From: Penicillus capitatus
Taxonomy: Eukaryota; Plantae; Chlorophyta
Direction of reading: 5' to 3'
Assembly: GCA_965649825.1 (NCBI GenBank)
Contig: OZ287708.1
Span: 203,311-267,310 of the forward strand
DNA length: 64,000 nucleotides
Both the position numbers and the translations under genes were made by a program. Numbering within the stretch: position 1 is the first letter of the stretch; every line of letters begins with the position of its first letter. Positions 5,088 to 64,000 of this stretch are shown piece after piece. Under the pieces are notes generated by a model. The model was not told where the DNA came from. It was given only the letters and a program-made list of their open reading frames with translations, and ran no database searches.

Positions 5088-5700
5088 CGCCGCCCGAGAC
5101 ACAAAGAGGCGTCCACCTGACGTCTCACCGCCGCCAGAGACACAATAAGGCGTCCACCTGACGTCTCACCGCCGCCAGAGACACAAAGAGGCGTCCACCT
5201 GACGTCTCACCGCCGCCAGAGACACAAAGAGGCGTCCACCTGACGTCTCATCGCCGCCAGAGAAGGAGACAGGCGTCCACCTGACGTCTCACCGCCGCCA
5301 GAGAAGGAGACAGGCGTCCACCTGACGTCTCACCGCCGCCAGAGAAGGAGACAGGCGTCCACCTGACGTCTCACCGCCGCCAGAGAAGGAGACAGGCGTC
5401 CACCTGACGTCTCACCGCCGCCAGAGAAGGAGACAGGCGTCCACCTGACGTCTCACCGCCGCCAGAGAAGGAGACAGGCGTCCACCTGACGTCTCACCGC
5501 CGCCAGAGAAGGAGACAGGCGTCCACCTGACGTCTCACCGCCGCCAGAGAAGGAGACAGGCGTCCACCTGACGTCTCACCGCCGCCAGAGACACAAAGAG
5601 GCGTCCACCTGACGTCTCACCGCCGCCAGAGACACAAAGAGGCGTCCACCTGACGTCTCACCGCCGCCAGAGAAAGAGACAGGCGTCACTCTGACGTCTT
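5088..5700. repeat. 41-bp tandem minisatellite (family B), 14 near-perfect copies
   Basis: GCGTCCACCTGACGTCTCA recurs every 41 bp from 5109 to 5642. Two variants are present (GAGACACAAAGAG and GAGAAGGAGACAG). Confidence 0.97.
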
Positions 5701-6185
5701 TCCGCCGCCGGAGAGAGAGAGGCGTCCAACCTGACGCTTGGCCGCTTCCTGAGAGAGAGGCGTCCAACCTGACGCTTGGCCGCTGCCTGAGAGAGAGGCG
5801 TCCAACCTGACGCTTGGCCGCCGCCAGAGAAAGAGACAGACGTCACTCTGACGCCTGGCCGCCGCCGGAGAGAAAGACAGGCGTCCAACCTGACGCTTGG
5901 CCGCTGCCTGAGAGAGAGGCGTCCACCTGACGCCTTTCCGCCGCCGCCGGAGAGAAAGACAGGCGTCCAACCTGACGCCTGGCCGCTGCCAGAGAAAGAG
6001 AGAGGCGTCCAACCTGACGCCTGGCCGCTGCCAGAGAAAGAGAGAGGCGTCCAACCTGACGTCTTTCCGCTGCCGCCGAAGAGAGAGGCGTCCACCTGAC
6101 GTCTTTCCGCCGCCGAAGAGAGAGGCGTCCACCTGACGTCTTTCCGCCGCCGAAGAGAGAGGAGTCCACCTGACGTCTGGCCGCC
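5700..6185. repeat. Diverged family-B monomers (~38-43 bp)
   Basis: Repeated AGGCGTCCA(A)CCTGACG(C/T) cores separated by GAGAGA/GAGAAAGA linkers. Confidence 0.9.
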
Positions 6186-7135
6186 GATGAAGACAGCAAT
6201 GGGCGACCAGCCCACCGCTCTGGAGGTCACCGGAGGCCATCCTTCCGCTCTGGCCGCCAGTGGAGGCGGTAATGGCGGCCAACAATCATCTGGCCGTCGC
6301 TGGAAACCGACCCAACGCTCTGGCCGCCAGTGGAGGCGGCAATGGCGGCCGACAATCATCTGGCCGTCGACGAAGGCCATCCTTCCGCTCTGGCTGCCCC
6401 TGGAGGCAGCCAGAGCACCCTACTTGATCTCTCGGTGCCACTCGAGGCAGCAATGGGCGACCAGCCCAACGCTCTGGCTGCCAGTGGAGGCAGCCAGGGC
6501 ACCCTACCTGATCTCTCGCTGCCACTCGAGGCAGCAATGGGCGACCAGCCCAACGCTCTGGCTGCCAGTGGAGGCAGCCAGGGCACCCTACCTGATCTCT
6601 CGCTGCCACTCGAGGCAGCAATGGGCGACCAGCCCACCGCTCTGGCTGCCAGTGGAGGCAGCCAGGGCACCCTACCTGATCTCTCGCTGCCACTCGAGGC
6701 AGCAATGGGCGACCAGCCCACCGCTCTGGCTGCCAGTGGAGGCAGCCAGAGCACTCTACCTACCTGCTCTGGCCGCCAGTGGAGGCGGCTATGGCGGCTG
6801 ACTGACATCTGGCCGTCGCTGGAGGCCGACCCTCACGCTCTGGCTGCCAGTGGAGGCAGCCAGAGCACTCTACCTACCTGCTCTGGCCGCCAGTGGAGGC
6901 GGCAATAACGGCCGACACTCATATGGCCGTCGCTGGAGGCCAACCCTCACGCTCTGGCTGCCAGTGGAGGCAGCCAGCGCACCCTACCTAATGCTCTTCC
7001 CGCCAAAGGAGGCGGCAATGGCGGCCGACTGACATCTGGCCGTCACTCAAGGCCTACCTTCTGCTCTGGCTGCCAGTGGAGGCGGCTATGGCGGCCGATT
7101 CGACATCTGGCCGCCGCCGGACAATTACTGGCGTC
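6186..7135. repeat. GC-rich satellite: 81-bp units (6445-6745) and 114/71/43-bp-type units
   Basis: An 81-bp unit appears as the 27-aa periodicity PLEAAMGDQPNALAASGGSQGTLPDLSL. GCTCTGGCTGCCAGTGGAGGCAGCCAG(A/G)GC cores recur, and the same monomers appear inverted at 61.5-64 kb. Confidence 0.95.
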
Positions 7136-7138
7136 CAA

Positions 7139-8420
7139 CTGACGCCTGGCAGCCGCTGGAGAAAGAGAGGCGTCCAATCTGATGGCTGTCTGTGATTGGT
7201 GTCAGTGCTCTTTTAGGGTGACCTTCCGCGCCGCACTGTAAGCTCTTATATCGTACAGTTGCATTTTCTTATTTTTTTCTGTAGACTTTGTGACGGGCCG
7301 GGCGACTTTTCTTCCGTGCACCACCGTTATCAGACCTGTCCACTTAACATCTCACTCTTAAGTCGCTTTGCTGAGAGCTATGATTCTATAGCTACAGTTT
7401 TAATATGTTATCAAAGCCTTCTACCTTTTTTACCTCTTATGTTTCGAGCACACAAGAAAGTACGACATCAGATTTCTTAGTTTTGGAAAGAGTAATGTGA
7501 CGAGAGAATAAAGTGCAGTCAAAGACCGTGCGTAATCTTCCCTGTGTCGAATGCACTAGACGATTTTAAGGAACTTCAGCTGCCAGCGCGTTTATCTCAG
7601 ATGGAGATTGCCTCCGCAGAATAGAATGCAGCATGGCGGCGGCGCCTGCCTATCTTGTCCTACAGAGATGACGACGTGTGCTCGCGAATGAGAGAGTATT
7701 ACACCACCACTGTGATCGAGTTCAATTCTTTTTCTTAAATGTTGTTGACGTTTACAATGTGTGTATGGTGTAATGTGTGTGACGTCAACGTTTAATATGT
7801 GCGTTTCTTATTCTATGCAAACAGTCAAGGAACACAGCGTTAAGAATGAACAAGGTATATCAACCTGATGAAGTACAATAAACAACATCAAGAACAACTT
7901 TACAGTCTTAGAGCATGCAGGAGTCAGCTTTCATAGATTGTGCCAGCTGAAGGATGACTCGGACATCCAGACACCAATGAATAGGAACTCAATGCACGCG
8001 ACAACCGAATGCAGTTTTTAATTCCAGTCTATATATGAATCTCGGCGTCAGCAACGTTCGGCAGTCTGATAGGCAGCAACAAAGCATATTAAGGGGCAGT
8101 AATAGGTGCTTCATGGAGAAGCAAGATGAAAACTAATGAGCGAAACCGGCACACATCTCAGCCATTGAGTCAAAGGGGATAGATGGCATGATGACTCAGT
8201 GCGGTGAGCATCACAGATCCGTCATGCGTGTGTTGGAATGGATACCGACCAAGGGTGCCGCGAGAAGCTTACAGGTATGCTTCCCTGGATTTTGTATGCG
8301 GACGCGCATGATGCCACAGACAGATAGACGCCAAACGCGAAACGTCTGCCGGGCAGATAGTGGGATAGATATCACTGATTTGAAAACATGTACTTTCAGA
8401 ACAGTCCTGTCCGTCGACTG
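7139..8420 (+). repeat. Left arm of the long inverted repeat
   Basis: Reverse complement of 59452-61513. 7139-7538 matches 61513-61114 with 2 mismatches (7167, 7438) and no indels. Further homology runs to ~8225, and ~8235-8420 matches ~59452-59641. Confidence 0.97.
8170..8235 (-). pseudogene. 3' remnant of the secreted-protein gene found at 59899-60483
   Basis: The minus strand reads HTHDGSVMLTALSHHAIYPL*, versus TMHNGSVVLTSLSHHVIYPL* in the right arm. Everything upstream (~780 bp, including the promoter and exons 1-2) is missing. Confidence 0.85.
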
Positions 8421-8630
8421 TCCTCTTATCGTGGATAAATAACATCATTGAGCAGTTTGGCCATTTCGGCGGAATTTGGCGATGGAGGCGATCGACGAAA
8501 CGTCCAAAGCAACAGACAAAAACGTCCTGGCGGCGGGAAGCGAAGACATTTACACAACAGATTCGGCGGGGCCCCCTCTCTCAGGTATCTCGTGATAGGG
8601 CGAATGCTCGCTCGTATCGATGACAGTCCG

Positions 8631-9315
8631 TCACACCACGTTGTCATCAACGTCGTTCTCTTGCGTCGATCGGTCGAGTCGATCATGAGCCTTGGCGAAA
8701 CTCTCTTGCACAACTGCTACGAATCGCATCTCCATTTCTCGCGTCCTGCGTTTCTCATGTAGAATCTGATTACGAAAGCAGGCAGGTACGCCATATCATC
8801 ATTCATGATCCCTCAACACGAGAGACACAGAGACGCACATTGTTTTTCAGTTCTCGGACGATCGAAGCATGCTCTCTCGCCACGCGCTCGTTTTCGTTAT
8901 TCTTTTCTTGAAGTGAGGTTCTGAGTTCAGCGAGGTCAGCGTTAGCTCTTTCCAGATGCTCTTGCATCTCTCGTTTCTCTTCCTATTCACCGGGCAATAG
9001 TCATGCTCTCAGCGCAGGAGGCGTCGCGGATGCCTACCTCTGCCTTGGCACGCAGACTGTTCGTTACGGCGACGATATGACCAGATGCTTCGTCCAGATT
9101 CTGTTGTGCTCGTTGTAAACGCGTTCTCCATTCTGCCTCCAACTGACGTGCCCGATTCACCTGCACCAGAGAAGACTGTTATCCCGATCCCGCCGCGAAT
9201 GCATGAGTAAACAAAACGCCTCTCGATTCTTCTCGTGGATCAGACGCTGCAAAAACGCGATCTCGTTTTGCGCTTGTCGCAATGTCTGTTGGTCAGAAGG
9301 TGTTTTTAATTCCAT
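8631..9315 (-). CDS. Small orphan coiled-coil protein, 4 exons
   Basis: MELKTPSDQQTLRQAQNEIAFLQRLIHEKNRE / VNRARQLEAEWRTRLQRAQQNLDE... / EEKREMQEHLERANADLAELRTSLQEK... / ILHEKRRTREMEMRF...DDNVV*. The first intron (9161-9219) is GC-AG. Confidence 0.7.
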
Positions 9316-9526
9316 CGCCTGTTCTCTTCCTGACGAGAGTGTGTAAAATTGACAGGCGAAACAACTACAAATGATTTGACATTTTCGTCAACGCGTTTAG
9401 AAAAAGAATCCCAACCATGCACATCTTGCAAGCTCGCACAGCATCCAAAAAGAACGAAACGTCGTCTTTCTGAAACACTGAGTTGTACATCGTGAATGCA
9501 CAAGGCATATTAAGAGAATAAAGAAT

Positions 9527-10976
9527 CTAATACAGTCGATTCAGAATGTAGTTGGTCATTAACTGAAGCGAATGCTTTGCTGGAGAGTCCAGCAAATCCG
9601 ACAGAGCAGCACGCGCCTAGAGAACGCGATCGTCAGTGAAGAGGCATGACGGCGATGATGTGACAGCAACCTTCAGAGCCTCGTCCGATGCGTACTGCAT
9701 GGCATCTGCAATGCCACCGACGGACTTGGTAAGCTGAATAGCATTTTCCAGAGATCCATCCTCTCTGAACTCTTCTTCGATCAACTCCCGCAATTCCGTA
9801 GACTTACGCAGTGCAAAGATAACGGGAGCTGTCAGATTTCCACTCGCCAGATCTTGACCCTGTAGACGCAACACAGCAAGGGACTCGACAAGCGAATTTT
9901 TGGGGACAGAGAAAGTGCCTGCGGTTTTCCAAGTATCTCTGTCGATTGCGTAAAGTCCAGAATATCATCCACCACTTGAAAGGCAAGACCGAGATGCTTG
10001 CCATAAGCATACATGGCAGCCTTTCCTGCCTCGTCCAGACCTACAGTACTCTCAGTGTAGAGGGCGATGCGCGACAGGGGTAGGTACCGCTGAAGATGGC
10101 AGAGGCTCGGCAGCTGGCAGCGATCAGCGATGCTGTTTTGAAGAAACTTTTGTTCATGTACTTCTCCAATGTGGTCTCCGTGTCGAACAGGACAGATGCT
10201 TGGCTGATCTCCCCATTGGCAAAATCTGCAATGACCTGACTGATCAATTTGATCACTTCCAGATTTTCGAGATTCGCCAGGTTCCATGAAGACTGAGCAA
10301 ACAAGAAATCTCCAACCAGCACAGCCATTCGTGTCCCATACAGGCGATTGACTGTGGCCTTTCCTGGACACACTCAGTCAGCAAAGAAAACGCCTCGCTC
10401 ATTTCTGACCTCTCCGCATGTAACACTCATCAATCACATCGTCATGAACCAGACTCGCCGTGTGGATCATCTCGGTGATCTCTGCCAGTCTTCGGTGCTT
10501 TTCCGTCAGCTCACTTCAGAAAATGCCTGTTAGATAGAGGGCGTGCAGGTATGCAGGTTTCACCCGTTTTCTGCCGTGGCGCGAGCAATCAGTAGAACCA
10601 ACAGAGGGCGAAGGCGTTTCCCTCCTGCCCCAAAAATCTGCTCCGCTGCTGCTAAGAGCAATGGATGTCGCTCCCCGATCGATTCCTTGAGATTCGTGTC
10701 GAGAATTTGCAGATCGTTTTCCACCGGTGTCACAATCTCTCCTAATGTTACTGGCGTTGCCATATTCTGCATCTCGCTCGCGTCACGACGACAGACACTT
10801 CTGTGATCATTGCACCTGTTCGGCGTCGGCGTTGAAAGAAGACGGTGTGGAGCTTTGTGTTTTGGCCGTTTCGTTGTGCAAAGTTGCATGAACGCTCGAC
10901 ACGCCTTGAGTGTACTTGCGAGCGTTGTGGATAGACCCTCGCGTTTTCCGCATACGTCCTTCGTTGCTGAAACCAT
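9527..10976 (-). CDS. SPS: Solanesyl diphosphate synthase (plastid trans-prenyltransferase), ~6 exons
   Basis: [75 protein letters not shown], with a transit-peptide-like N-terminus. The start codon is approximate. Confidence 0.95.
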
Positions 10977-11538
10977 CTGGACGCACACTCGGGCGATACG
11001 CGGTTCCTGCGATCATGGTGAAAACTCGGTTTTCGTTAGTAAGCAGCGCATACGATGACGCATCATGTCAAATTCTACGAGGAAACGACGGTGACTTGGA
11101 AAAGACGGTGACGCAACAGGACTACCACAGAATTGAGCATGAAACATTCACTAAGCTGCTGCACAGACTTGGCACTCAATTTCTCTCCCAGATCACTGCT
11201 ATTGCCACCCGGGCTGCATATTTGCACGTAAGCCGCTCTTCTGGCGAAGCCATGATATCCCTGGCCACCCTACCATCAGAGAAATGGTTTCATATGCACA
11301 CGGCTTTCAGAATCTCCATGCATAAGTGCGGTACCTGCTAATGCCATTGAGACGGAGAGTAAGTGGTGAAGGGTCATCCATACCAACAGAAGGATGAAGG
11401 GTAGACGTCGATGGCACCTTTCTTTCTTGAAATATCTCCCGGGTATATTCCAGTGGCATCATCTCTACGAGCCTCGGACTGTCAACGGAGGACTCTCTCG
11501 GTACTGTTATCGAAATCTAGACAGTGCCATCGACTTAC

Positions 11539-12522
11539 ATGGCCAAGACATTTGCCATCTCTATCCCGCGACCTTCCCAAGTCCAGGGAACAAAGACAAG
11601 GCGAACGGATGTTCGACCCAGTCGACAGCCTATGTATCGACGGCCGGGCCGCCAATCGATGACGGTCGTCGCTCTTCGTCACAATTCGACGTCTTCAGAT
11701 GCAGATCCGCCACGAGAAAAGGCATCCAGTGTCGGCTCTGTGGGCAGAGAGCTGGAGCAGATGGTGCGTGTTCCACCTCTGTCCTTCCCTTCGTTGCGGC
11801 AATGGGCTCAGCGTTTGAACCCAGACATATGGGTCCCCCTCATGACACTTGTCGGATTCTCAGCGACAACTTTTCTCGTATTTGCAGCAGAACCAACAAA
11901 TTTCTTGCTGTTCTTTGATCACAGTGTCCAGAACTGGACGGTCTCGACCATTCCATCCTCCATTCGCTATACCGTTTTCCAAAAGGGTATCTCCAACATC
12001 TTTTTTGTCTTTGACTTTGTCGTCGGCTCTTCATTGATCTTCATCCATGGACTTGGAAAGAGAAAAAAGGAATTGGCATTGACTGGATTCTCAGCTTTGT
12101 TTTTCTACGTTCTCATGGGTTCTCATAACTATGAGGGATGGGTGATCCATTTCCTCAAAGAAACCTTCCATCGATGTCGTCCACAAAGTGGCATGATTTC
12201 TTATTCTTTTCCAAGTGGACATGTCACCTGTGCCGTTTTCTTAACGGGAACACTGCTCTATGTCTGGCTGCCTGCCGCAGAGCGAAGTCTCAACACAGAT
12301 TCCCCTTCATTCGTTCGACGGTATGTGGAAGTGCTAAGGTCGGGCATGGGAAACAAAATGCTGTTTTGGGGACTGAGCTATTTGTGCACTTCGATCGGTC
12401 GGGTGGGAGGAAATGTGCATTGGGTGTCGGATACAGTAGCAGGTGGCTTAGTCGGAATGGCACTCACCTCTCTTCTCGTCTCATCCTATACAGCCCTGTA
12501 CAACCGCATAGACAAAGTTTAA
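11539..12522 (+). CDS. PAP2-family lipid phosphate phosphatase, intronless
   Basis: All three PAP2 motifs are present: KETFHRCRP, SFPSGH, GRVGGNVHWVSD. Hydrophobic helices and a Ser/Arg-rich N-terminal extension. Confidence 0.9.
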   Translation: MAKTFAISIPRPSQVQGTKTRRTDVRPSRQPMYRRPGRQSMTVVALRHNSTSSDADPPREKASSVGSVGRELEQMVRVPPLSFPSLRQWAQRLNPDIWVPLMTLVGFSATTFLVFAAEPTNFLLFFDHSVQNWTVSTIPSSIRYTVFQKGISNIFFVFDFVVGSSLIFIHGLGKRKKELALTGFSALFFYVLMGSHNYEGWVIHFLKETFHRCRPQSGMISYSFPSGHVTCAVFLTGTLLYVWLPAAERSLNTDSPSFVRRYVEVLRSGMGNKMLFWGLSYLCTSIGRVGGNVHWVSDTVAGGLVGMALTSLLVSSYTALYNRIDKV

Positions 12523-12675
12523 CACCCGATTCTACGAACAGCCCCTATTCCTAAACCCGAACGAAATCTCAAGCATATGTCACAAAACGGACAAAATCAT
12601 AAAACAGCGAAAAAACAGAAGCGGTCATGACAGGAAAAGAGAAAGAATGAACACAAGTGTCTGCCGAGTGTTGGA

Positions 12676-15408
12676 CTAGGCTCTGGAAGCGGGGAGGTAC
12701 TCCCTCTTCGTGAATTTTCCGTTTAGACTCTTGAGGGCACTCATTAACTTGTTGGTATCGTTCACCAACTCTTGCATCTCATTCCAGTCGAGCTGAAAAG
12801 CTGGATGTCGATATTTGTCCATTTCATCTCGCTCTTCTTCCCTTTCTCCTTCGATCTCCTCCTGACGATCGGCAACATCGAGATCATGCGCCGCTCTGAG
12901 GGAGAGGATTCTGAGCGGTTTGTCGTAGAGGTGATGAACGAGAATTCTGAAAAAGAGTGTGAGGAAAGGCAGTGGAATGAGCAGTGCAGAATAAGGGAAT
13001 CTCTTGATCGCGAATAGGCCGATCATCATAGACTGCATGACGACCAACCCCCCTATCACATGTTCAAATATATGCTCCCAGAGCTTGCCACCACTTTGAT
13101 ATTCCTCTGAATAGATATACAACATGTTGTAAGTCCATGTCAGCTTCATTGCCAGGAAGTACGCCAACGTGACTGGCAGAACGATGGGATTGACAACGGA
13201 GAAGGCCAGACCCAACAGAATGGTAAGTGTATGATTTGGCACTTCTACGCCGTACTCCATCGTCTGGTGTTTCCAGATTCGGGCCTTGGCGCGTTCCGTT
13301 CCAGCAAACCTGCCCATGAGCCATAGCTGTATCAAATTCACAAGGTTCAGAAAGCTGATGCCTCCTTCGAGTAAACCGGTGTAGAGAATGTAAGAAATGA
13401 AAAACGTGGCAGACTGCGGTGCAGCGACACCCAGGATATCTCGAATGGAGCTTGGATTGTCTCGGATCTCTTGGATCTGGGTCAAAAGGGAACTGGCAAT
13501 GAAGCTAAAGAAAAAGACAGTGATTGTTTGGAAGACAAAGTACTTTCGCACAACCCCGAAATCGATCTCGCTCAAACTGATCATACCCTGCGCACGATTC
13601 ATGTGCTTCAGCAGAGAAGGCAGAAAAGCCAAGAAGAGCTTTAGAGCCAGATTGGGCACAACAGCCTTCAAGATTCCATTGATCAATGGAAAAGTGACGA
13701 TCGAGCCGATGACGGGGTATCGTTCCAGACGATCCATTTGGATGAGGCCCTGGACGAAAGTGACAGGCACGATGAAGAAGAGACAGAGACAGGTAAAACT
13801 GATCCATGCTGCCAGCAACCGCACAGTGCGTTCCCATCCTCTCAGTTTCAGATTCTCCCAGATCAGTTCTTCCGGATGCGGTGCTGCCTGAACATTCCAA
13901 AACGTCGGGAAATGATGATGGAAGGCCGTTGCTGCGATCGTCTGCGCCCATCTACTGCGAAATGTCACGAAGGCAGCCGGGACGTGCCATTGCGTCATGG
14001 CAAACCTCTCTTCCGTCATACGAATCTTCAGCGACTGCAGTTTCAGGACAAAGTACTCAAGTAGATCGACCTCCAGAGGTTTTGATCCAAAAGCTTCGAC
14101 AGCCCAGCTGCCTTCCAGCAATGGCACAATTCTCTTCTTGATGATATCGACGTCAATGATCCCTTCGTTAAGTTTTGAAACATAGTGGTCTATCAAATCC
14201 TCCAGCTTCTCCGTTATCTTGTTGTAGTCGGAGAAGAGTTTCTCCAAAGTGGTCGTGTCATAAATGACGTTGGCACATTTGACGAGTCCATTGGGATAGA
14301 CATCACGAAACTGTTTGAGGACAATCTCTTCCAGACGTGCACCGTTTGCAAGTTGCGATGTGACCCACGTTACTGGATCCATGTCTGTCACATCACAGGG
14401 ATTCACCCACTTCGTTCCAGCTTCTGCAATACATACATTCATTGAGTCCCGACGACAGACATTTCCTAACAACGCCATGTTCTTGGTCTTTCTGAGCGAC
14501 ACTCTCTTTGTCGTTTGCTGCAGCTGATCTCCGACCGTCTGGGCCAATTGTGTCGAAATCTGATTCACTTGTGAGATCCCTTGTGTCGCAACGGAGAAAA
14601 GCAATTCGATGGAAGATTCGACACGGGCACGGAGACGTTTGGGTAGATACTTGAACAGTACAGATCGCATTAACCGATCCAATGGCGATCCAAATCTCAA
14701 TCCTGGCACATCTGTGACCAATACGGTATGCGCCTCGGCACCGTTCTCCGTTGTGGCCAGAAATCGAATTCTGAGATCCATGGCATCGTGATGATACGTC
14801 CACAGAAGCTTCAGCGTGTACAGTGTGATAAACCAGACGGACAGGAGATGAGCCCAGAGGCGATTGGAACCGGGTTTGATATTCGCCATCGACAGTTTAT
14901 CGAAGGATCCAATCTTATAGCTCACCGACTCGGCATCGCCAAAATCGGTTGCCTCGAACTGAGTGTCATTCACGGCCGTTGGATCGTTCTCTCGTATCTC
15001 CATCAATTCCTCTTTCGTCAGTTGTCCAGCCTCGAGGCGTTCCAGAATATCTACGCGTTCATCGGTGAGATTCACAGGCAAAACGATGAGCAGATTGAAG
15101 AGGGACAGGACGACGAAGAGTCGAATGCCGAAGGAAAAGAGGCGGAGATAGACGGCAGCATCGTATCCGGCTGTCTTGATGATGTCCTCTTCGGTAAAGG
15201 AGAAGAGAGGACGCACCCAGCCGAGAAAGTAGGTATCGGGGAGTTGCTTCGGCCGCATGTATTTTGGATGGTCGACATAGCGTTTGGGCGCATAGATCTT
15301 CTTTGTGTACTGCGACCGTCTGAGCACGTTGAAAGCGAAAAGACATCCGACGAATCCCGCCAGGTCCCATGCAACTGTGACACTGAACGAGGCAAATGTC
15401 GTCGCCAT
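12676..15408 (-). CDS. OSCA: OSCA/ERD4 (CSC1-like) calcium-permeable mechanosensitive channel, intronless, ~910 aa
   Basis: IYAPKR, AGYDAAVYLRLF, AAFVTFRSRW, APHPEELIWENL, YGVEVPNHTLTILLGLAFSVVNP, YQSGGKLW, and many transmembrane segments. The ORF track starts at a TTG; the first ATG is 15408. Confidence 0.95.
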   Translation of the reverse strand: MATTFASFSVTVAWDLAGFVGCLFAFNVLRRSQYTKKIYAPKRYVDHPKYMRPKQLPDTYFLGWVRPLFSFTEEDIIKTAGYDAAVYLRLFSFGIRLFVVLSLFNLLIVLPVNLTDERVDILERLEAGQLTKEELMEIRENDPTAVNDTQFEATDFGDAESVSYKIGSFDKLSMANIKPGSNRLWAHLLSVWFITLYTLKLLWTYHHDAMDLRIRFLATTENGAEAHTVLVTDVPGLRFGSPLDRLMRSVLFKYLPKRLRARVESSIELLFSVATQGISQVNQISTQLAQTVGDQLQQTTKRVSLRKTKNMALLGNVCRRDSMNVCIAEAGTKWVNPCDVTDMDPVTWVTSQLANGARLEEIVLKQFRDVYPNGLVKCANVIYDTTTLEKLFSDYNKITEKLEDLIDHYVSKLNEGIIDVDIIKKRIVPLLEGSWAVEAFGSKPLEVDLLEYFVLKLQSLKIRMTEERFAMTQWHVPAAFVTFRSRWAQTIAATAFHHHFPTFWNVQAAPHPEELIWENLKLRGWERTVRLLAAWISFTCLCLFFIVPVTFVQGLIQMDRLERYPVIGSIVTFPLINGILKAVVPNLALKLFLAFLPSLLKHMNRAQGMISLSEIDFGVVRKYFVFQTITVFFFSFIASSLLTQIQEIRDNPSSIRDILGVAAPQSATFFISYILYTGLLEGGISFLNLVNLIQLWLMGRFAGTERAKARIWKHQTMEYGVEVPNHTLTILLGLAFSVVNPIVLPVTLAYFLAMKLTWTYNMLYIYSEEYQSGGKLWEHIFEHVIGGLVVMQSMMIGLFAIKRFPYSALLIPLPFLTLFFRILVHHLYDKPLRILSLRAAHDLDVADRQEEIEGEREEERDEMDKYRHPAFQLDWNEMQELVNDTNKLMSALKSLNGKFTKREYLPASRA

Positions 15409-15977: not shown

Positions 15978-16049
15978 AGGGGACTAGCGGATTCGAACCA
16001 CTGGCCTATCGATCTGCAGTCGATTGCTCTACCACTGAGCTAAATCCCC
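15978..16049 (-). tRNA. trnC-GCA: tRNA-Cys (GCA)
   Basis: GGGGATT-TA-GCTCAGTGGTAGAGC-A-ATCGA-CTGCAGA-TCGAT-AGGCC-AGTGGTTCGAATCCGCT-AGTCCCC-T folds as a full cloverleaf with a U73 discriminator and a T-run downstream. Confidence 0.97.
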
Positions 16050-22600: not shown

Positions 22601-24411
22601 AGAGCATGCATGGCTTCCGCTTCAAGCATATCATTCTTCTGGTCACACTTCGCATGTATCCATGCTAGTAGCGTCTGTCTTTGATCCGATCGTGTATATG
22701 GTATGTGGCAAACAACTTGTTGCCACTTTTCCGAATCGTCTATCTCGTAGTGCTCTCGACCGAAGGCCAGAATGAAGTTATCTGTTTCATTTTGGAGACG
22801 TTCGTCGAAGAGAGGCTGTTCGAAATGCACGTGAAGCTGCGTTCCAGCACAGACGGCTGTTCTCTTGATCGTGCGCGTCTCGTCGTCTTCGATCACGTCA
22901 ACACGATCGTTACCTGCCAACCACAGATACGTAGAGAGAACAGACAACAAACGGGATTGCGTTACCGAGCGGTGTCCACTCGTCGGCATCTTTACCAAAA
23001 AGCAGCGCCACTCCCTTGGCAAAATCGGCAGGATGGTCCGTGGCAATGACACACGAGGCTGTCGACGACGCAAAATCGTCCAGCTCCTTCTGCGCGGCTT
23101 GCCACACGTGTTGAAGATGGGCGGGTCTCAGCAAAGGGATCTGGAGAATCTAACAACGCAGAGAGCGCGAGTGATGCTCGGTACTCGACGGCAGGGCGCG
23201 ACGAACTTCATCGGAGTCCCGTAGCTGCACATCGACGACACCGTTCCACGTCATGATGGCGGCGGTGGGTGCTCTTTTCAGACACGAGACAGTTCAGACG
23301 GCACAAGGCCTCAGCATCGAAGCGCACGAAGATGTTCGAGAGTATCGCCATCATCGCTAACAAACCGACGTCATCGTATTCTGTCAGCGAACCGATCGAT
23401 AGCGAGATCGACAGAGGATGTCCCTTAGACGTAGATTGTAGTTCGTGAACATGTGCGAGACGGGGGAGTGACAGCGACAGGCACGTCGACATCTGACGCA
23501 GGAAGGACATGGTGATGACCGATGGTCGTTAAAGCGACATCTTATCTATCACCTGTGTTCTGTAGTCAGATCTGGAGAATGTCTTTGCAGATAGAGCACG
23601 TCTTGTTTAAGACAGCAAACAAGAAGAGAGTGCAACGGGATGCCATCCGACAATCGAAAGTGTATCTCTGGAGATACGTCGTCCGATGAGAGGATCGAGG
23701 ACACAACGCCTTGATCGGCATACTCAAGAAACGGCGATGGGTGCCTCTAAACCATCGCCTTCGTTTTTACGGTAGAAGGACGGTCCACTAAACCTCCGAT
23801 CTGTATCCCCTTTTTCGACAATCGTCGATCGCACGGCGAATGGCGTCAGATGGGATGACGGACCGGCAATTTAAACAGAATGGCCATTTGTCCTGCGACG
23901 ATTGTATTCTTGGACATCTGTTGTTGTTTGGATCCGTGTCCTTCTGGAAATAACGTCGTCGATGAGACGAGAGTCGATGATGGTCAGGATCTCTCTGTTT
24001 GTTGTCACCGCCCGCCATGACTTCGAACGATCCATTGGACACAGACTCCGCGTCTCCTATCGCTTTCGATATTCCTCTTCCTATAGTGTGCCCTCTCTGC
24101 TGCGATTGGACTTATGAGGTCACTGCATCGTGTATACCACCGATGCGCACGAAACAGGCCAATCGAGACGCGTTAGGTGTGTCCGAAAAAATGCTGTCCA
24201 TCCATAGAAGCTACAGTTCGCGATCGGAACGCGCCGAATCGCGAACACGACCAATCCCTTCCCGTTGCGAATTCGACAAAGGAGGAGCTTCTCTTGGTGT
24301 CTGTGGCAACACAGGAATGGTGACGTTTTCGCGGATCGTACCGCAAATGCCGTCGATCATCGAACTCAAGGTCTCCGAGACGTCAGTGCGAGATCGCTCA
24401 GCAATCTTCAT
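16683..24411 (-). CDS. Very large multi-exon ARM-repeat protein with a conserved algal C-terminal region (possibly flagellum-associated)
   Basis: Exons can be joined in frame from ~23.2 kb down to 16683: ARM-like helices (AAVVWGMAR, VAAACAGLAFLA, VLVALLNLSVLERNQ, NQANRTRLYKAEL), then LTMFEHVEGARV..., LMRFEFMEAIVRI and LSFIDFLEALARVA. The 5' end (23.2-24.4 kb) is not resolved, and the region could be two genes. Confidence 0.6.
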
Positions 24412-24482
24412 TTCGTAACGTATTCTTCATTTCTGCTTTTTCTCTGTTTCGTCGACGAGTCGTCGTTTCGACATTGGCTCCA

Positions 24483-50994: not shown

Positions 50995-50997
50995 ATC

Positions 50998-53709: not shown

Positions 53710-53729
53710 AGTCGTCATTTTACAGAGCT

Positions 53730-53734: not shown

Positions 53735-53935
53735 GTTGTTGTTGTTGTTGTTCCGTGTACACCCCAGATTAGTAAGTGAGTGCTCAATGTCACAACACAG
53801 CTCATGTGTACGCGTCAATCGTACCAGTCGGCTCACGAAGATTTGTCTGCGTTACCCACATTATTCCGCAGATCAGCTTGAGGGCGATAGAATTCGATGA
53901 TAGCTGCGGGGAGAAGATCACCCCATGAAAATTAA

Positions 53936-54448: not shown

Positions 54449-54666
54449 GTTTGCGTCGGGGGACGTGTCTGTTGGGTACGGACGAGAGAGGGTTGCTAGA
54501 ATGACGACAGTGCGACTCAATGCCACTAAAACGATGCAAGAAGTATAAACAGAGGGGTATACTACGAACAACGAGGGATAAACGATGCGAATGACTGGAT
54601 GTTGTGAAAAACGATGCTCTGACCAGAGAGGAGGTGGCAGTACGCCGTGATGTGACGTGCGATGAC

Positions 54667-56804
54667 ATGCGGGCAACGCGGCTGCTGATCCGAACACCGC
54701 GGGTCTGGGGTTTGGAATGGCGAAGTGCTCTGCTTCCGCGAAGCGCTGTCTGGAAAAAAGGCATTCGCCAGCGAGGATCCTACCAGACACAGGCATCGGT
54801 TGCTTCGGTCGTCGAAGACACAGTGGACCCTCGTGAAGATGAGGGCACTTCTTTGCGCAAACTGCAGCTGCGTGCATCGTTGGTGGATGGATTGATGGAA
54901 GCCGGCATCACATCCTTTACTGAAATCCAGGTCTATCTGTAGCGAACACTTGTTGTCAGCAGCAATCTGTTTGTGATCTCTAGGAGAAAGCGATTCCTGT
55001 CATTCGAGAATGGAAAGACGTGTTGATTGCTTCGCATACAGGATCCGGCAAAACCTATGCTTACTTGCTGCCCATCGTCATCTCATAGATATCGTCGATC
55101 TGTTGTGCGAGTTGGGATTTTTTGTCTGGCAGATTGAACGGTTGAAGAATGAGGAAGAGGCCGAAGATGTTACCGCTCCGCTGAGAGAAAAACGACCGAG
55201 AGCTATTGTCTTGGGTCCCGCTCGCGAACTGACCGATCAAGTGAGATGCGATGCCAGATAGATGGAGATGCGATTTACGGTTTGCAGATTCTGAAAGTGG
55301 CCAAGTCTTTGAGTCATCATGCCAAATTCTGTTCCACTGTCCTCAATGCAGGCAGCAAGTGAGATAGATGCCTTGCTCACGGAACTCCAAACAGACAGAC
55401 ACTTCACAAACAGGTCACAGGTGCAGAAACAGAGTTTAGCCTTACACCAGGACATCGTCGTGGCAACACCTGCGAAACTGTTGGAACACCATTCTGCCAA
55501 AAATGTCTTCCTACGCGATGTCCAAGTCCTGGTCCGTGGTGCCTCTGTACATACCCCTTGCTGACATCTTTACGTCGGAGGTGTTGGATGAGGCAGATAC
55601 TTTGTTGGACGAGACATTTTTGAGGGATACGAGGTTCATTGTCAACATGCTTAAGTATAAAGAAGGTCGCTGTCAATTCATTTTGGTGGCGGCGACGGTC
55701 ACCAAGGTCAGCTATCGGTTCTCTGTCACTCCTGTTCGAGATGGAAACGTGCAGAAAGTGCAGTCACTTATGAAATTGATGTTTCCCGATTTGGTGGTTG
55801 TTCAAACATCGACGTTGCACAAAGGCGTCTCGGGATCTCTCCACAACTTCCCCATTCTCAAACCTGGAGAGGACAAACTGCATCTGTTAAGAGATGTCTG
55901 TCATCGGAAGTGTGAGAACGATCGGTCACTCTTTGTGTGGATTTGAGTAGGTACTGGCAAGAGGAAAGAACAGATCTGCCAAGACCATGGTGTTCTGCAA
56001 TACTCTGAACAGTTGTCGTTGTGTTGAACATGTTCTTCAAGAACAGGGCTTTGCTACACTCTGCTATCACGGTGAAGTGCCCAAGAGCGAACGCAAAGGC
56101 ATCATCGATCGGTTTGCGGGTGCAACACATCCTCTTGCGGTTTTCTTATCTAAAATTTCTGCCATAGATTATGAGCACGAAAATCATATCCTCGTCTCCA
56201 CAGATCTTGCGTCGAGAGGGTTGGATATCCCGGGACACGTAGATCACATCATCAACTTTGATTTCCCTCGTACTGCTGTAAGTATATTGTCGCAGAAGGA
56301 ATGGTATATGTGTGACGGAATGTGTGATCCAGATTGATTATCTCCATCGAAGTGGCCGAACGGCTCGGGCCGGTTCGACGGGGAAGATCACATCACTGGT
56401 TTCTGGAAAAGATCGAATCCTGGCAGATCGCATCAAATGGGCCATCAACAATGACAATCCACTCGACGAATTGAGTGCGGACAAAAGAATCCTTCCACCG
56501 TCGTCCAGGTCCTTGTCAGAAATGGTTGATGTCTACTGCTCTAAACGCTGTGTCCAACAGACCGGCGAACAACGACAGAAAGAAGGCGGATTCTCGTCTA
56601 ACCTCTTTGTCGAACAGATCGGCAGACAAGGACAAAAAGAAAGCAGGTTCTCCGACGAAGCCCACGATGAAAGGTCTCAGAGGAACCAAACGCATTGAGG
56701 CGTTGGAAATACGAGCCAAAGAGATGGCCAAAAAGAAGAGACTGACGAAGAGAACATCACACAAAAAGCGACGCGACTCGATTTTCCAGAAGAAGAAGAA
56801 ATGA
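54667..56804 (+). CDS. Organellar DEAD-box RNA helicase (RH39/RH50-like), multi-exon
   Basis: SFTEIQ, SHTGSGKTYAYLLP, PARELTDQ, IVVATP, LDEAD, MVFCNT, LVSTDLASRGLD, DYLHRSGRTARAG, and a basic C-terminal tail. Confidence 0.93.
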
Positions 56805-56833
56805 TTATGGGTGTTTTGTTACAGTATTTAACA

Positions 56834-57907: not shown

Positions 57908-58179
57908 CGCGACAGTGACGTACGTATCGAAGGATGGAAAGTGTGGAGATGATTTCTGCTGTCTTTTGCTCTAATTGTCAACTATTGTACCACATCAAAC
58001 GCTGCTCCAACACTCAACCTCGCGATATGATGGTGATGATGTAAACGAAACTCTCTTAACTGTTCGGACGATATGCGAAAGCGGAAGCGAAGAGCTGTCC
58101 ATTGAAAAACAGTCACTGCAACCATAAAGCACTTATAGTCAGAGAAAGCTTAAACAAGACGTTCATCGACAGACACTCT

Positions 58180-59009
58180 TTAATGTGACCGAAAACATCT
58201 TCGAAACGTTCATGGAGAACTTCTTATGTGCACTCGGATCAGCGTTCTCGCTGATATCCATCGGTTTTCTTTTGATCGGGTATTCTCCTTGCTTCTCGGT
58301 TTTACGATTGATGAGTTGGTTATGTTGCACGATACAGTCAGGTTGTGTGAGAGCTTGGCAAAGCATTTCCTGTACCTCACGTGTGCTAAAGAAGTACAGT
58401 AAAGTCAAGTTGTGAACGTGGAAACCAAAGTTGACAGAATTCATCCACGATGTTATGCGGACGCAAGAGGCAGTCCGTACTCATTGAAAACTGATCGGCG
58501 TTGGCAGAATACAGACATTTAAGAAAGTAAGCCTATATGTATGTGGCTGGCTGCCTGTTTCAGAAAGCAAACAATAGAAACAATACTAAAGAGGTCATTC
58601 TTACATGCAGGCGACATTCCCTTGATTGTGCTCTCTGTCATGGACTTGACGGAAATGACTTGATCGTTGCAGAGCCGTCGGAGGAAAGATATATATATCC
58701 GAAGAAGTCGACCCGTGTCAAGAGCGTGGAGCAGCTGTCCAAGCATGTCGACTGAACGAGGTTACCGATTGCAGACGGAGATCTCTTCTGTGGGATCTTC
58801 TTCTATCGTCAGAGATGAAGAGTGATATGACAGATAATGAAATTGAATCGATGCTGGATCGCTGGAGAGTCTCGAGAAAGTGGCCGAAGCCGAATCTCGC
58901 CAAGGTACAACTACAAAGACGGGCAGATGCTTTAACAGAGGAGTTCGTGTCTTCGACAGATAACGCTGAAACCAAGAAGGGATTGAAAAAAGGATTCCTG
59001 TCGGCATAA
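58180..59009 (+). CDS. Uncharacterised multi-exon gene (model unresolved)
   Basis: Protein-like open segments SVLADIHRFSFDRVFSLLLGFTIDELVMLHDTVRLCESLAKHFLYLTCAKE and LLWDLLLSSEMKSDMTDNEIESMLDRWRVSRKWPKP are flanked by candidate splice sites. The start was not found. Confidence 0.35.
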
Positions 59010-59721
59010 CAACAACCAAACGCTCAGCCATCTGCAAAACCGAAGGCTGTTCACTGCTCTCTTCCCGTTTCTCATAAATCTGGCAGAGCATCGGCGATGA
59101 CGACTGAGCAAAAAGATGAACAGTCCGTTTGTGTCTCGGAAACGGTGCGAGAGAGGAACATCCAGATGGAGGAGAGCGCAGAGGACACTGGCACCGAGAA
59201 GGTCGGCATCTCTGAATCGGCCAATGTATGGCGGCTCTGGAATTCTGTAGTCGGATAAGAGTATGTCACTCTTGAAGAAAAGATTGCTCGTAGGGCGCCG
59301 TATTATATAGTTTCCTCATCTGTCATGGCTTCTCACGGTGAAGAGAGAAATGCTCACGGGGAAATGCGCACTCAGCTGCTCGGGTCTTGATAATGAAGGC
59401 TGACGGCTAAAATGTCGTCGGACACAAGTTGACTGGCAGAGTGCACGAAGCACAGCGACGTATAGGACTGTTCTGAAAGTACTTGTTTTCGAGTCAGTGA
59501 TATCTATCCTACGGTCGGTCCGTCAGACGTTCGGCGCGTTAGGCGTCTATCTTTTTGCAGCGTCTTGCACGTCCGCATACGAAATCCAGGGAAGCATACC
59601 TGTAAGCTTCTCGCGGCGCCCTTGCTGGGTATCCATTCCAATAATCAAAGATGCCGTACTGACAGCGAAAAATGAGAAGCTTCTGAAGTGCGAAACTGCA
59701 AGGTATCGCATACGAGGCTCT

Positions 59722-59727
59722 TATAAA
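59722..59727 (+). promoter_or_regulatory. Candidate TATA box for the secreted-protein gene
   Basis: CTTATAAACG lies ~175 nt upstream of ATG 59899, inside the segment deleted from the left arm. Confidence 0.4.
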
Positions 59728-59898
59728 CGAACGGGTTCTATTCGTTGTAACAGTGTCCGCGGCCGTTTCTCTGTGTCCTCCACCAGAACTCTCGTGTCTC
59801 GTGATTATTACTGTGACACTTGTCTGTGCGATTCCTAACATCCTGTGCCCTTTCACCGACCCCTGACTACGCGCCGCCACCTGTGTCCGTGTTCAGAG

Positions 59899-60483
59899 AT
59901 GTCTCTTGGGCAAGGTCTGACGCAAAAGTAGCGTGTTCTTGTCTGAGACTGCGTTCTGTCGCTGCACAGCGATTCAACTGCTGTGCGCTGTCCTTCTCGC
60001 ATCGGTTGCCGCCGAAGATTCGGCGGCACCTGTCTTTTGCGTTGCGCCTCCGGAGGGTGACTGGGTCGTCGAGCACCACTTTCCGTCCGGGCCTGGCAAT
60101 GATACCATCGTGCTGCAGGCACACAGCATTCTGAAGCTCCAAAAGGAAGCTACTCCATACGTGTACACAGGTAAGGGGAGCATCTCTCGCAGACGTGGAA
60201 ACCGCCGAATCCGTTTTGCATTCTAGGCTACGGTGCGGGTATTTGGACCAATCCCCAGAGTCCCCTGTTCCCTGCAAACACCCCACTGACATACAAACTG
60301 ATAGGACTTTTCAACACGGACAAATGCGTCTTGTCGGGAACAATGTTCAATCTTGAAACGACGGCTGTGGATGCAGCTCTCTGGATATACGACGGCGAGA
60401 AATTGAGCGGTTCATTCGCCACGATGCATAACGGATCTGTGGTGCTCACCTCACTGAGTCATCATGTTATCTATCCCCTTTGA
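59899..60483 (+). CDS. Small secreted protein (157 aa), 3 exons (59899-59914, 59970-60170, 60227-60483)
   Basis: Two GT-AG phase-1 introns give an open frame: MSLGQAIQLLCAVLLASVAA signal-like sequence, then EDSAAPVFCVAPPEGDWVVEHHF...YTGYGAGIWTNP...DKCVLSGTMF...HHVIYPL*. No family recognised. Confidence 0.8.
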
Positions 60484-61515
60484 CTCGATTGCTGAGATGT
60501 GTGCCGGTTCGCTCATCAGTTTTCATCTTGCTTCTCCATGCAGCACCCATTACTGCCCCCTTGATATGCTTTGTTGCCGTCTGTCAGATTGCCGAAAGTT
60601 GCTGACGCCGAGATTCATGTCTAGACTAAAATTAAGAACTGCATTCGGTTGTCGCGTGCATTGAGTTTCTATTCATCGATGTCTGGATGTGCGAGCGTTC
60701 CTTCAGCTGGCACAATCTATGACAGCCATCTCCTGCATGCTCTAAGACTGTAAAGTTGTTCTTGATGTTGTTTATTGTACTTCATCAGGTTGATATACCT
60801 TGTTCATTCTTAACGCTGTGTTCCTGACTGTTTGTATCGAATCCGACACGCACATATTGAACGTTGACGTCACACACATTAGACCATACACACATTGTAA
60901 ACGTCAACAACATTTAAGAAGAAGAATTGAACTCGATCACAGTGGTGGTGTAATACTCTCTCATTCGCGAGCACACGTCGTTATCTCTGTACGGCAAGAT
61001 GAACAGAAGGCGTCGCCATACTGTATTCTATTCTGTGAAGGCAATCAGCGTCGGAGAAAAATAGGCTTATGGCTAAATTCCTTACAAAACGTCTGGTGCA
61101 TTCGACACAGGATAGATTACGCACGGTCTTTGACTGCACTTTATTCTCTCGTCACATTACTCTTTCCAAAACTAAGAAATCTGATGTCGTACTTTCTTGT
61201 GTGCTCGAAACATGAGAGGTAAAAAAGGTAGAAGGCTTTGATAACATATTAAAACTGTAGCTATAGAATCATAGCTCTCAGCAAAGCGACTTAAGAGTGA
61301 GATGTTAAGTGGACAGGTCTGATAACGGTGGTGCACGGAAGAAAAGTCGCCCGGCCCGTCACAAAGTCTACAGAAAAAAATAAGAAAATGCAACTGTACG
61401 ATATAAGAGCTTACAGTGCGGCGCGGAAGGTCACCCTAAAAGAGCACTGACACCAATCACAGACAGCCATCAGATTGGACGCCTGTCTTTCTCCAGCGGC
61501 TGCCAGGCGTCAGAT

Positions 61516-62015
61516 TGGATGCCTCTCTCTTTCTCTGGCGGCGGCCAGATGTCAGTCGGCCGCCCATTGCCGCCTCCATTGGCGGCCAAAACATCAGGTA
61601 GGGCGGCGCCCTGGCTGCCTCCACTGGCAGCCAGAGCAGAAGGATGCCTTCCGGTGACGGCCAGACGTCAGGTGGACGCCTGTCTTTGTCTCCAGCGGCG
61701 GTGAGACGTCAGGTGGACGCCTGTCTTTGTCTCCAGCGGCGGTGAGACGTCAGGTGGACGCCTCTTTGTCTCCAGTGACGGCTAGGTGTGAGTCGGCCGC
61801 CATTGCCGCCTCCACTGGCGGCCAGAGCGGTGTGCTGGTCGCCCATTGCCGACTCGAGTGGCAGCGAGAGATCAGGTAAGGTGCCCTGGCTGCCTCCACT
61901 GGCAGCCAGAGCAGTGAGCTGGTCGCCCATTGCTGCCTCGAGTGGCAGCGAGAGATCAGGTAGGGTGCCCTGGCTGCCTCCACTGGCAGCCAGAGCGGAA
62001 GGTAGTAGGCCTTGA
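61516..62015. repeat. Inverted satellite block: mixed monomers, three 41-bp family-B units (~61660-61780) and 81-bp units
   Basis: GACGTCAGGTGGACGCCT recurs at 41-bp spacing, and the 81-bp units are reverse complements of those at 6445-6745. Confidence 0.93.
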
Positions 62016-62178
62016 GCGACGGCCAGATGAGTGTCGGCCTCCAGCGACGGCCAGATGAGTGTCGGCCTCCAGCGACGGCCAGATGAGTGTCGGCCTCCAG
62101 CGACGGCCAGATGAGTGTCGGCCTCCAGCGACGGCCAGATGAGTGTCGGCCTCCAGCGACGGCCAGATAAGTGTCGGC
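62016..62178. repeat. 28-bp tandem repeat, ~5.5 copies
   Basis: GAGTGTCGGCCTCCAGCGACGGCCAGAT; GGCCAGAT recurs at 62021, 62049, 62077, 62105, 62133 and 62161. Confidence 0.97.
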
Positions 62179-62179
62179 C

Positions 62180-64000
62180 GCCATTGCCGCCGCTATTGGC
62201 GGCCAGAGCCGGTAGGTAGAGTGCTCTGGCTGCCTCCACTGGCAGCCAGAGCGGAAGGCAGTAGGCCTTGAGTGACGGCCAGATGTCAAACAGCCGCCAT
62301 AGCCGCCTCCATTGGCGGGCAGAGCGGAAGGTAGGGTGCCCTTGGCTGCCTCCACTGGCAGCCAGAGCGTGAGGGTTGGCCTCCAGCGACGGCCAGATGT
62401 CAGTCGGCCGCCATTGCCGCCTCCATTGGCGGCCAGAGCCGGTAGGCAGGGTGCCCTTGGCTGCCTCCACTGGCAGCCAGAGCGTGAGGGTTGGCCTCCA
62501 GCGACGGCCAGATGTCAGTCGGCCGCCATTGCCGCCTCCACTGGCGGCCAGAGCCGGTAGGCAGAGTGCTCTGGCTGCCTCCACTGGCAGCCAGAGCGTG
62601 AGGGTTGGCCTCCAGCGACGGCCATATGAGTGTCGGCCGCCATTGCCGCCTCCACTGGCAGCCAGAGCGTGAGGGTTGGCCTCCAGCGACGGCCATATGA
62701 GTGTCGGCCGCCATTGCCGCCTCCATTGGCAGCCAGAGCCGGTAGGTAGAGTGCTCTGGCTGCCTCCACTGGCAGCCAGAGCGTGAGGGTTGGCCTCCAG
62801 CGACGGCCATATGAGTGTCGGCCGCCATTGCCGCCTCCATTGGCAGCCAGAGCCGGTAGGTAGAGTGCTCTGGCTGCCTCCACTGGCAGCCAGAGCGTGA
62901 GGGTTGGCCTCCAGCGACGGCCATATGAGTGTCGGCCGCCATTGCCGCCTCCACTGGCAGCCAGAGCGTGAGGGTTGGCCTCCAGCGACGGCCATATGAG
63001 TGTCGGCCGCCATTGCCGCCTCCATTGGCAGCCAGAGCCGGTAGGTAGAGTGCTCTGGCTGCCTCCACTGGCAGCCAGAGCGTGAGGGTTGGCCTCCAGC
63101 GACGGCCATATGAGTGTCGGCCGCCATTGCCGCCTCCATTGGCGGCCAGAGCAGGTAGGTAGAGTGCTCTGGCTGCCTCCACTGGCAGCCAGAGCGTGAG
63201 GGTTGGCCTCCAGCGACGGCCAGATGTCAGTCGGCCGCCATTGCCGCCTCCACTGGCGGCCAGAGCCGGTAGGCAGAGTGCTCTGGCTGCCTCCACTGGC
63301 AGCCAGAGCGTGAGGGTTGGCCTCCAGCGACGGCCATATGAGTGTCGGCCGCCATTGCCGCCTCCACTGGCAGCCAGAGCGTGAGGGTTGGCCTCCAGCG
63401 ACGGCCATATGAGTGTCGGCCGCCATTGCCGCCTCCATTGGCAGCCAGAGCCGGTAGGTAGAGTGCTCTGGCTGCCTCCACTGGCAGCCAGAGCGTGAGG
63501 GTTGGCCTCCAGCGACGGCCAGATGTCAGTCGGCCGCCATTGCCGCCTCCACTGGCAGCCAGAGCGTGAGGGTTGGCCTCCAGCGACGGCCATATGAGTG
63601 TCGGCCGCCATTGCCGCCTCCATTGGCAGCCAGAGCCGGTAGGTAGAGTGCTCTGGCTGCCTCCACTGGCAGCCAGAGCGTGAGGGTTGGCCTCCAGCGA
63701 CGGCCATATGAGTGTCGGCCGCCATTGCCGCCTCCATTGGCAGCCAGAGCCGGTAGGTAGAGTGCTCTGGCTGCCTCCACTGGCAGCCAGAGCGTGAGGG
63801 TTGGCCTCCAGCGACGGCCATATGAGTGTCGGCCGCCATTGCCGCCTCCACTGGCGGCCAGAGCCGGTAGGCAGAGTGCTCTGGCTGCCTCCACTGGCAG
63901 CCAGAGCGTGAGGGTTGGCCTCCAGCGACGGCCAGATGTCAGTCGGCCGCCATTGCCGCCTCCATTGGCGGCCAGAGCCGGTAGGCAGAGTGCTCTGGCT
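62180..64000. repeat. Higher-order satellite of 71-bp and 43-bp monomers (114-bp dimer), running off the window end
   Basis: For example, 63061 to 63175 is 114 bp. Both monomers begin GCCTCCA(C/T)TGGC(A/G)GCCAGAGC, and lone 71-bp monomers are interspersed. Confidence 0.97.

Follow-up and report, generated by a model that had tools for sequence, protein, structure and literature searches.

Large inverted repeats on either side of ordinary genes are known from human Xq28, where 11.3-kb repeats that are more than 99% identical drive the FLNA-EMD inversion (HsInv0389; bioRxiv 10.1101/2020.04.20.051185; PMC3961182). In Drosophila, inverted duplications at inversion breakpoints have been attributed to staggered breaks, a model that needs the segment to be inverted when compared with an outgroup (Ranz et al. 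2007, PMC1885836). A 64,000-bp stretch from the green alga Penicillus capitatus (assembly GCA_965649825.1, contig OZ287708.1, positions 203,311 to 267,310), hereafter the window, holds a block of housekeeping genes between two oppositely oriented cassettes, each consisting of a repeat arm with satellite arrays outward of it. The cassettes are interpreted here, with a probability of roughly 0.8, as parts of two clusters of low-copy composite repeats in opposite orientation, of which they are the innermost copies, inside a normal large nuclear chromosome. The locus is best read as a set of inverted low-copy repeats at a rearrangement hot spot specific to this lineage, which adds one more example to a known kind of structure.

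Two genomes, both reached by exact-protein look-up, allow the locus to be compared. Strain A is the ENA metagenome assembly ERZ25074695, in which the locus lies on ctg340397 (572,224 bp, 41x). It is 99.2% identical to the window and colinear with it over 2691-25408 and 40998-61638, 98.7% identical over 1-13986, and separated from it by a synonymous divergence (dS) of 0.02. Relative B is ENA ERZ26696514 with the contigs ctg303824 (2.24 Mb) and ctg303768 (959 kb), and it is 84-88% identical to the window with a dS of 0.37-0.41. Coordinates preceded by L and a number refer to loci fetched from these assemblies. The sequence called X below is the one from which the arms derive. The parts of the window that the comparison with relative B defines are the following:

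8407-57986, + strand: single-copy syntenic gene block of about 49.6 kb, colinear with relative B
7053-8424, - strand if X in the right arm is taken as +: left arm, a truncated X in place
58591-61602, + strand: right arm, an inverted copy of X at a new site and the most complete one
59642-60425, + strand: segment of 784 bp found only in the right arm, also in X of relative B and deleted from the left arm
8405-8417, no strand: deletion junction where X is joined directly to the left end of the block (synteny end-point 8407)
57987-58590, no strand: 0.6-kb interval from Wbp11 to the right copy of X, for which relative B gave no match

Relative B is colinear with the window over exactly 8407-57986 (L005 1-16981; L001 441-17157), and on its 2.24-Mb contig the block spans about 1.16-1.21 Mb. 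To the right of the block are LIAS (lipoyl synthase) and Tos1. To the left are COG4, then X (L007 about 8546-11007), then a segment called F, and then PEX1. Within the loci fetched, X is single-copy in relative B and adjoins COG4, and no tandem repeats were found over the 20.5 kb that span the left boundary of the block. X of relative B is homologous to window 58591-60845 (the right arm with its inner extension) at 74-78%, and the right arm is colinear with it over L007 8780-9889, 10056-10696 and 10716-11007. X of relative B has the position and orientation of the left arm, and thus the left arm is X in place in truncated form. The copy that makes up the right arm is inverted, more complete and situated between Wbp11 and LIAS. 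At the right junction, divergence of the intergenic DNA from relative B is too great for an empty site to be defined.

The truncation of the left arm is a microhomology-associated deletion of about 3.7 kb that removed COG4. In a four-way alignment the junction switches from homology to X to homology to the sequence before COG4 across an imperfect TCCT..CGTCG microhomology, and the roughly 3.7 kb retained in relative B, with all of COG4 and its flanks (L007 5942 to about 9637), is gone at this point. In strain A a 3' fragment of COG4 (L011 17234-18152) adjoins LIAS in inverted orientation, and an HSP70 fragment (L008 3280-4765) lies between sequences that flank COG4 in relative B. A paralogous unit on a second strain A contig, ctg339690, has a full-length HSP70 in the same place (L012 13296-15153). 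Derivation of this order from that of relative B by one or two inversions was tried and rejected, as no simple path fits the COG4 flanks around HSP70, the COG4 fragment and the ends of F.

The two contigs of relative B are about 99% identical in the regions compared (L001 with L006, L004 with L005; dS 0.013-0.022), have similar coverage (178x and 185x) and differ in the copy number of a tandem repeat of about 66 bp near L001 15520-15860. Two haplotypes, or two strains that occur together, are the probable explanation.

The homology between the arms is strongest at their outer ends. A repeat finder gave 7139-7827 and 60825-61513 as the longest inverted repeat in the window, and self-BLAST aligned 7053-8227 with the reverse complement of 60426-61602 (91.7% over 1181 columns) and 8233-8424 with that of 59449-59641 (85.6%). 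Left-right identity is 99-100% at 7150-7549, 88-96% at 7650-8148 and 85.6% at 8233-8424. The parts of the right arm shared with the left are thus 59449-59641 and 60426-61602, and since the matches end at 59641 and restart at 60426, the 784-bp segment between them is found only in the right arm. A first-pass annotation made from the window alone had described one cassette on both sides in opposite orientation, an identity that peaks at the outer edge and decays inward, and copies that differ by substitutions, a large indel and satellite order. Arm homology and satellites bear out this description, and the indel is the 784-bp segment. It had also denied that the cassettes are a duplication made by the assembly, and the independent assembly of strain A agrees in having both of them at 99.2% identity. 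The annotation was sound on structure but not in its ranking of explanations.

Among ten open reading frames (ORFs) of the outer flank and arms, Pfam gave just one sub-threshold match to DUF3433. A tBLASTx comparison of the right arm with X of relative B gave weak hints of a coding frame only (60214-60513), and no gene is claimed in the arm.

Outward of the arms lie satellite arrays, which were called with Tandem Repeats Finder. The body of the window is about 50% GC throughout, and the GC-rich parts (64-67%) are at 5-7 kb and 62-64 kb. The arrays are the following:

5087-7182, + strand: left satellite arrays, with units of 41, 70, 84, 114 and 39 bp
5087-6186: left array, 41-mer in 27 copies
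6234-6407: left array, 70-mer
6386-6761: left array, 84-mer
6722-7083: left array, 114-mer
7107-7182: left array, 39-mer
61470-64000, - strand: right satellite arrays, cut off by the end of the window
61470-61775: right array, 42/41-mers
61808-61996: right array, 84-mer
62008-62183: right array, 28-mer
62140-64000: right array, 114-mer in 16 copies

Left and right arrays have related monomers of 41, 84 and 114 bp in common, and their order and copy number differ. A 26-nt monomer core occurs 28 times (0 expected by chance), is confined to the arrays and lies on the + strand in the left and on the - strand in the right arrays. These data confirm that GC-rich satellites of common monomers lie outward of both arms, as had been noted from the window. 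A hairpin with a 12-bp stem is present in each 84-mer (z = -4.7) and each 114-mer (z = -3.6). The right array region extends over about 3 kb in strain A (L008 8288-11303) and is followed by more repeat units. Homologues of the satellite ORF were found on contigs of 572, 147, 50, 18 and 792 kb, the match on the 792-kb contig being weaker. JGI metagenome contigs gave no match when scanned with the satellite core, nor with a 43-nt string from an arm stretch in which left and right are 100% identical.

Strain A has additional satellite families with units of 38, 50 and 94 bp outside the 114-mer array (L008 8288-9584). They are not in the visible part of the window and recur at L012 7547-9847. A minisatellite of 48 bp in 2.4 copies lies at 4308-4422 in the outer left flank of the window.

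The mirror arrangement, with satellites outermost, homology decaying inward and an orphan gene nearby, had made a chromosome of only 65-80 kb with two subtelomeres the preferred explanation in the first-pass annotation. The embedding of the locus in strain A and relative B refutes this explanation. Strain A carries both cassettes, and the equivalent of the window is found at about 146.5-210.5 kb of the 572-kb contig. The whole repeat structure occupies about 118-217 kb, and the contig extends past it by more than 118 kb at one end and by more than 350 kb at the other. Genes and non-satellite sequence persist beyond both cassettes, as in window 1-5087. Leftward of the window strain A has 6.7 kb more of repeats and called genes, and rightward it has more repeat units and then LIAS, which is about 31 kb from Wbp11 in strain A and 1.7 kb from it in relative B, in the same orientation. 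In relative B the block is internal to the 2.24-Mb contig. Telomere repeats were searched for with eight motifs, and neither the window nor the 83 kb of strain A joined from overlapping loci with zero conflicts had a run of three or more units. The telomeric arrays or contig ends that had been proposed for a check just outside the window were looked for in strain A and not found there; the contig continues, with LIAS on the distal side. The probability left for a minichromosome is close to nil, and it would require that the organism of the window has another karyotype than a strain at a dS of 0.02.

The orientation of LIAS also bears on a single inversion with staggered breaks, which was considered as the origin of the two arms. 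Block and LIAS have the same relative orientation in strain A as in relative B, and it was rejected on this ground.

Strain A further shows that each cassette belongs to a larger cluster. The core of the arm (window 7458-8227) has five copies on ctg340397 and two more on ctg339690. On ctg340397 the right arm and the copies A3 and A4 have one orientation and lie on one side of the block, and the left arm and the copy A5 have the opposite orientation and lie on the other side. The outer 320 bp (7139-7457) are common only to the two arms adjacent to the block. A3 adjoins a 41/114-mer satellite of its own, and A4 and A5 are near satellite tracts of these monomers. The flank to the left of the left arrays takes part in the same repeats:

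1-939, no strand: segment F, a part of the low-copy repeat, 81% identical to L007 12801-11868 of relative B, just beyond X
940-5086, no strand: segment of the low-copy repeat that relative B lacks at the orthologous site (no match in L007), including a segment called P (1425-3491)
3166-3999, + strand: proline-rich orphan ORF carried by the repeat unit, its true start codon being uncertain

Copies of the 940-5086 region were found in strain A at L009 5584-7929 (90%), L008 5216-7262 (81%) and L011 15634-17235 (82%), and on ctg339690 at L012 5005-7414 (83.5%). In strain A the whole of window 1-5087 is present a second time, inverted, past the right satellite, with an identity of 96.7% for 1-1123 (L009 4409-5530) and 90% for 1117-3463. 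All matches of at least 500 bp between the flanks are inverted, among them 5.5 kb at 95.4% and 2.4 kb at 90%, so the flanks are mirror clusters, the left one at least 15 kb and the right one about 28 kb long. The repeat mosaic that holds the right arm is about 31 kb long and lies between Wbp11 and LIAS. The mirrored region is much larger than the first-pass annotation had described. A 17-kb paralogue at 90-94% identity with two arm cores is present on ctg339690 (147 kb, 41x), which comes from the strain A sample.

The copies have ragged end-points and include varying amounts of neighbouring DNA (F, the COG4 flanks, HSP70). All copies of F are truncated at one point, L007 13737, just short of PEX1. 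X, the hairpin satellites and the neighbouring segments (P with its orphan gene, and F) have been copied several times in the lineage of the window, and further copies, which exchange sequence, lie outside both arms and on another contig. With paralogous stretches of 1.18 kb at 91.7% and 5.5 kb at 95.4%, the copies are low-copy repeats in the usual sense of non-transposon paralogues of at least 1 kb and about 90% identity or more. They also have the marks of segmental duplications, as the source is single-copy in the outgroup loci fetched and the end-points vary and take flanking DNA with them.

This pattern can be compared with that expected if the cassettes were copies of a mobile element, either as two independent insertions or as the ends of a giant composite transposon. 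Such an origin is favoured by the occurrence of the multi-copy family on several contigs and by the repeat-borne gene, which belongs to a dispersed orphan family. The block is not cargo, however, as it has the same order and neighbourhood in relative B, where X is single-copy and native to the locus, and the variable end-points with neighbouring DNA carried along are like those of segmental duplications. Pfam found no domain of a transposase, reverse transcriptase or integrase in the called genes of the repeat-holding loci or in the ORFs of the arm and of P, which extends the absence of a transposase reported from the window. A mobile origin of the cassettes is very unlikely. Among the explanations offered from the window, a composite dispersed repeat comes nearest to the truth in that there are at least seven arm cores on at least two contigs, but these look like segmental duplications of native sequence and not like transposon insertions.

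The proline-rich ORF at 3166-3999 is open in four copies (the others being L009 7491-8549, L010 10001-10762 and L012 7044-8027), with in-frame indels and conserved N- and C-terminal parts. Its ratio of nonsynonymous to synonymous divergence (dN/dS) is 0.25-0.39. Pfam gave no domain. Among 1.84 billion representative proteins 22 diverged homologues were found, and the ten that were looked up are spread over ENA contigs of eight different sizes. The ORF belongs to a lineage-restricted, dispersed orphan family. Of the genes that had been noted near the arms, this one orphan is real.

The arms do not evolve independently of each other. Left and right arms are 91.7% identical in the window and 96.0% in strain A. 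Orthologous arms of the window and strain A are 97.5% (left) and 96.8% (right) identical, and the flanking DNA is 99.2% identical. A four-way alignment of the arms has 42 fixed left/right differences, 40 of which are in the inner part between columns 682 and 1154, and the inner half of the arm has about 9% fixed differences. Private sites are also clustered: 33 of the 36 sites private to the left arm of the window are within columns 508-621 (115 bp), and 27 of the 31 private to its right arm are in the outermost 110 bp. The first of these clusters corresponds to one feature:

7545-7690, no strand: gene-conversion tract of about 115-146 bp in the left arm of the window, with a source of A4/A5 type

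Its identity is 79% with the right arm and with the left arm of strain A, against 94.6% with A4, 92.5% with A5 and 91.8% with A3. Since it matches these copies at 92-95% and the other three arms at 79%, it is a gene-conversion tract from a third copy. The tract was acquired after the window and strain A separated, and the clustered site patterns together with the identified type of donor show gene conversion between copies, that is, concerted evolution. Copies of the repeat-borne gene on opposite sides of the block have a dS of 0.28-0.30, and the copy on ctg339690 has a dS of about 1.0. By this measure the divergence between the two sides is younger than the split from relative B (dS about 0.4).

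Copies that demonstrably interact by gene conversion might also recombine. An actively flipping or polymorphic invertible segment, with non-allelic homologous recombination between the arms or the mirror clusters, is favoured by inverted repeats that are 99-100% identical along about 400 bp and about 92% identical along 1.2 kb, by mirror segments of 5.5 kb at 95% and by the known analogue of the human Xq28 FLNA-EMD inversion (bioRxiv 10.1101/2020.04.20.051185; PMC3961182). The geometry permits inversion, as the first-pass annotation had recognised in listing it, but a single orientation has been seen: window and strain A, the only two repeat-bearing genomes available, are colinear, and the orientation of the block relative to LIAS is as in relative B. 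Active inversion of the block is unlikely, though a real possibility.

The bracketed geometry, and nothing else, would also suit cassettes that mark the boundaries of programmed excision, elimination or amplification, which had been proposed as the second choice from the window. Relative B keeps the block without any brackets, the structure belongs to a nested set of several copies whose ends are ragged, and both repeat-bearing contigs of strain A are labelled 41x in their record names. Such a role is highly improbable.

The block itself holds well over a dozen conserved housekeeping genes. They include ELP1, ATG9, a GH31 glucosidase II, a protein with WD40 and Katanin_con80 domains, RSN1 and PAP2, and further a polyprenyl synthase, a protein with an Argonaute N domain, an RRM protein, RsmB and Wbp11. 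The cargo of ordinary essential genes named from the window (ELP1, ATG9, GH31 glucosidase II and katanin p80 type) is thus correctly identified. For the GH31 protein the best named matches are green algae at about 54% (Bryopsis, Ostreobium and Auxenochlorella), and metagenomic proteins reach 91%.

A tRNA-Cys (GCA) at 15978-16049 on the - strand is the sole Rfam or ARAGORN match in the whole window. A tandem repeat of two 57-bp units lies at 56540-56652, downstream of the C-terminal region of a DEAD-box helicase. The ORF with the Argonaute N-terminal domain is found at 24265-25347 on the + strand, so that a component of RNA interference is encoded between hairpin-forming satellites. This placement is probably a coincidence.

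Taken as two clusters of low-copy composite repeats, the structure might have arisen by repair- or replication-based inverted duplication, through template switching or fold-back, rather than by transposition. The duplications would have originated at a fragile site rich in hairpins and satellites. The repeat complex would have no programmed function, and its main consequence may be that it serves as a substrate for ectopic recombination, by which the block could be inverted. A further and rather doubtful idea is that the hairpin satellites seed fold-back duplications and that the mirror clusters make the block invert recurrently in natural populations. If true, this would be a compact-genome counterpart of the recurrent inversions in humans.

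Several points weigh against the interpretation as low-copy repeat clusters. In the outer copies HSP70 occupies the place that COG4 has in relative B, and a 3' fragment of COG4 sits next to LIAS. PEX1, which adjoins on the left in relative B, was not seen in the 6.7 kb that precede the window in strain A. The structure beyond positions 1 and 64000 is that of the strain A metagenome assembly, which could contain errors in repeat-rich parts. Because the orphan family is dispersed over many contigs, a small probability must also be kept for an unrecognised mobile element behind the repeat. Finally, the mechanism of duplication is one that we infer.

The comparison removes an attractive but wrong reading, that of a fragmented karyotype with tiny chromosomes. 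It also shows how intergenic sequence that is single-copy in one lineage has become a satellite-laden, multi-copy and gene-converting inverted complex in its sister lineage, within a dS of about 0.4. The locus has lost COG4 from its ancestral position and carries a lineage-specific family of proline-rich genes. It should be flagged by annotators as structurally unstable, with inversion and mis-assembly as possible outcomes at this hot spot. The locus opens no new biological category, and its resemblance to described systems can be stated for each of them.

Centromeres of fission-yeast type have a central core flanked by inverted imr/otr repeats. The window resembles them in the mirror-symmetric clusters of repeats around a central domain, but its centre is 50 kb of gene-dense DNA, and the left edge is free of repeats in relative B (20.5 kb). 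A centromere is unlikely and was set aside. With subtelomeric domains the locus has in common satellites, paralogous blocks that undergo gene conversion and a fast-evolving multi-copy orphan family. Unlike them, it is internal to its contig, with 118 kb or more to both ends, shows no telomere repeats and has unique conserved genes on both of its outer sides.

As in the Drosophila inversions attributed to staggered breaks, sequence that is single-copy in the outgroup is found at both ends of the segment, inverted, in the derived lineage. In contrast to that model the block keeps its orientation relative to LIAS, and there are many more than two copies. The repeats of human Xq28 differ from those of the window, which are patchy, about 92% identical overall and 99-100% identical over only about 400 bp, and which are nested, multi-copy and satellite-containing, with one orientation seen in two repeat-bearing genomes. 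The two loci are nevertheless alike in that inverted paralogous repeats of kilobase scale flank tens of kilobases of ordinary genes in a normal chromosome, that the repeats are homogenised by gene conversion and that their geometry is that of a substrate for non-allelic homologous recombination.

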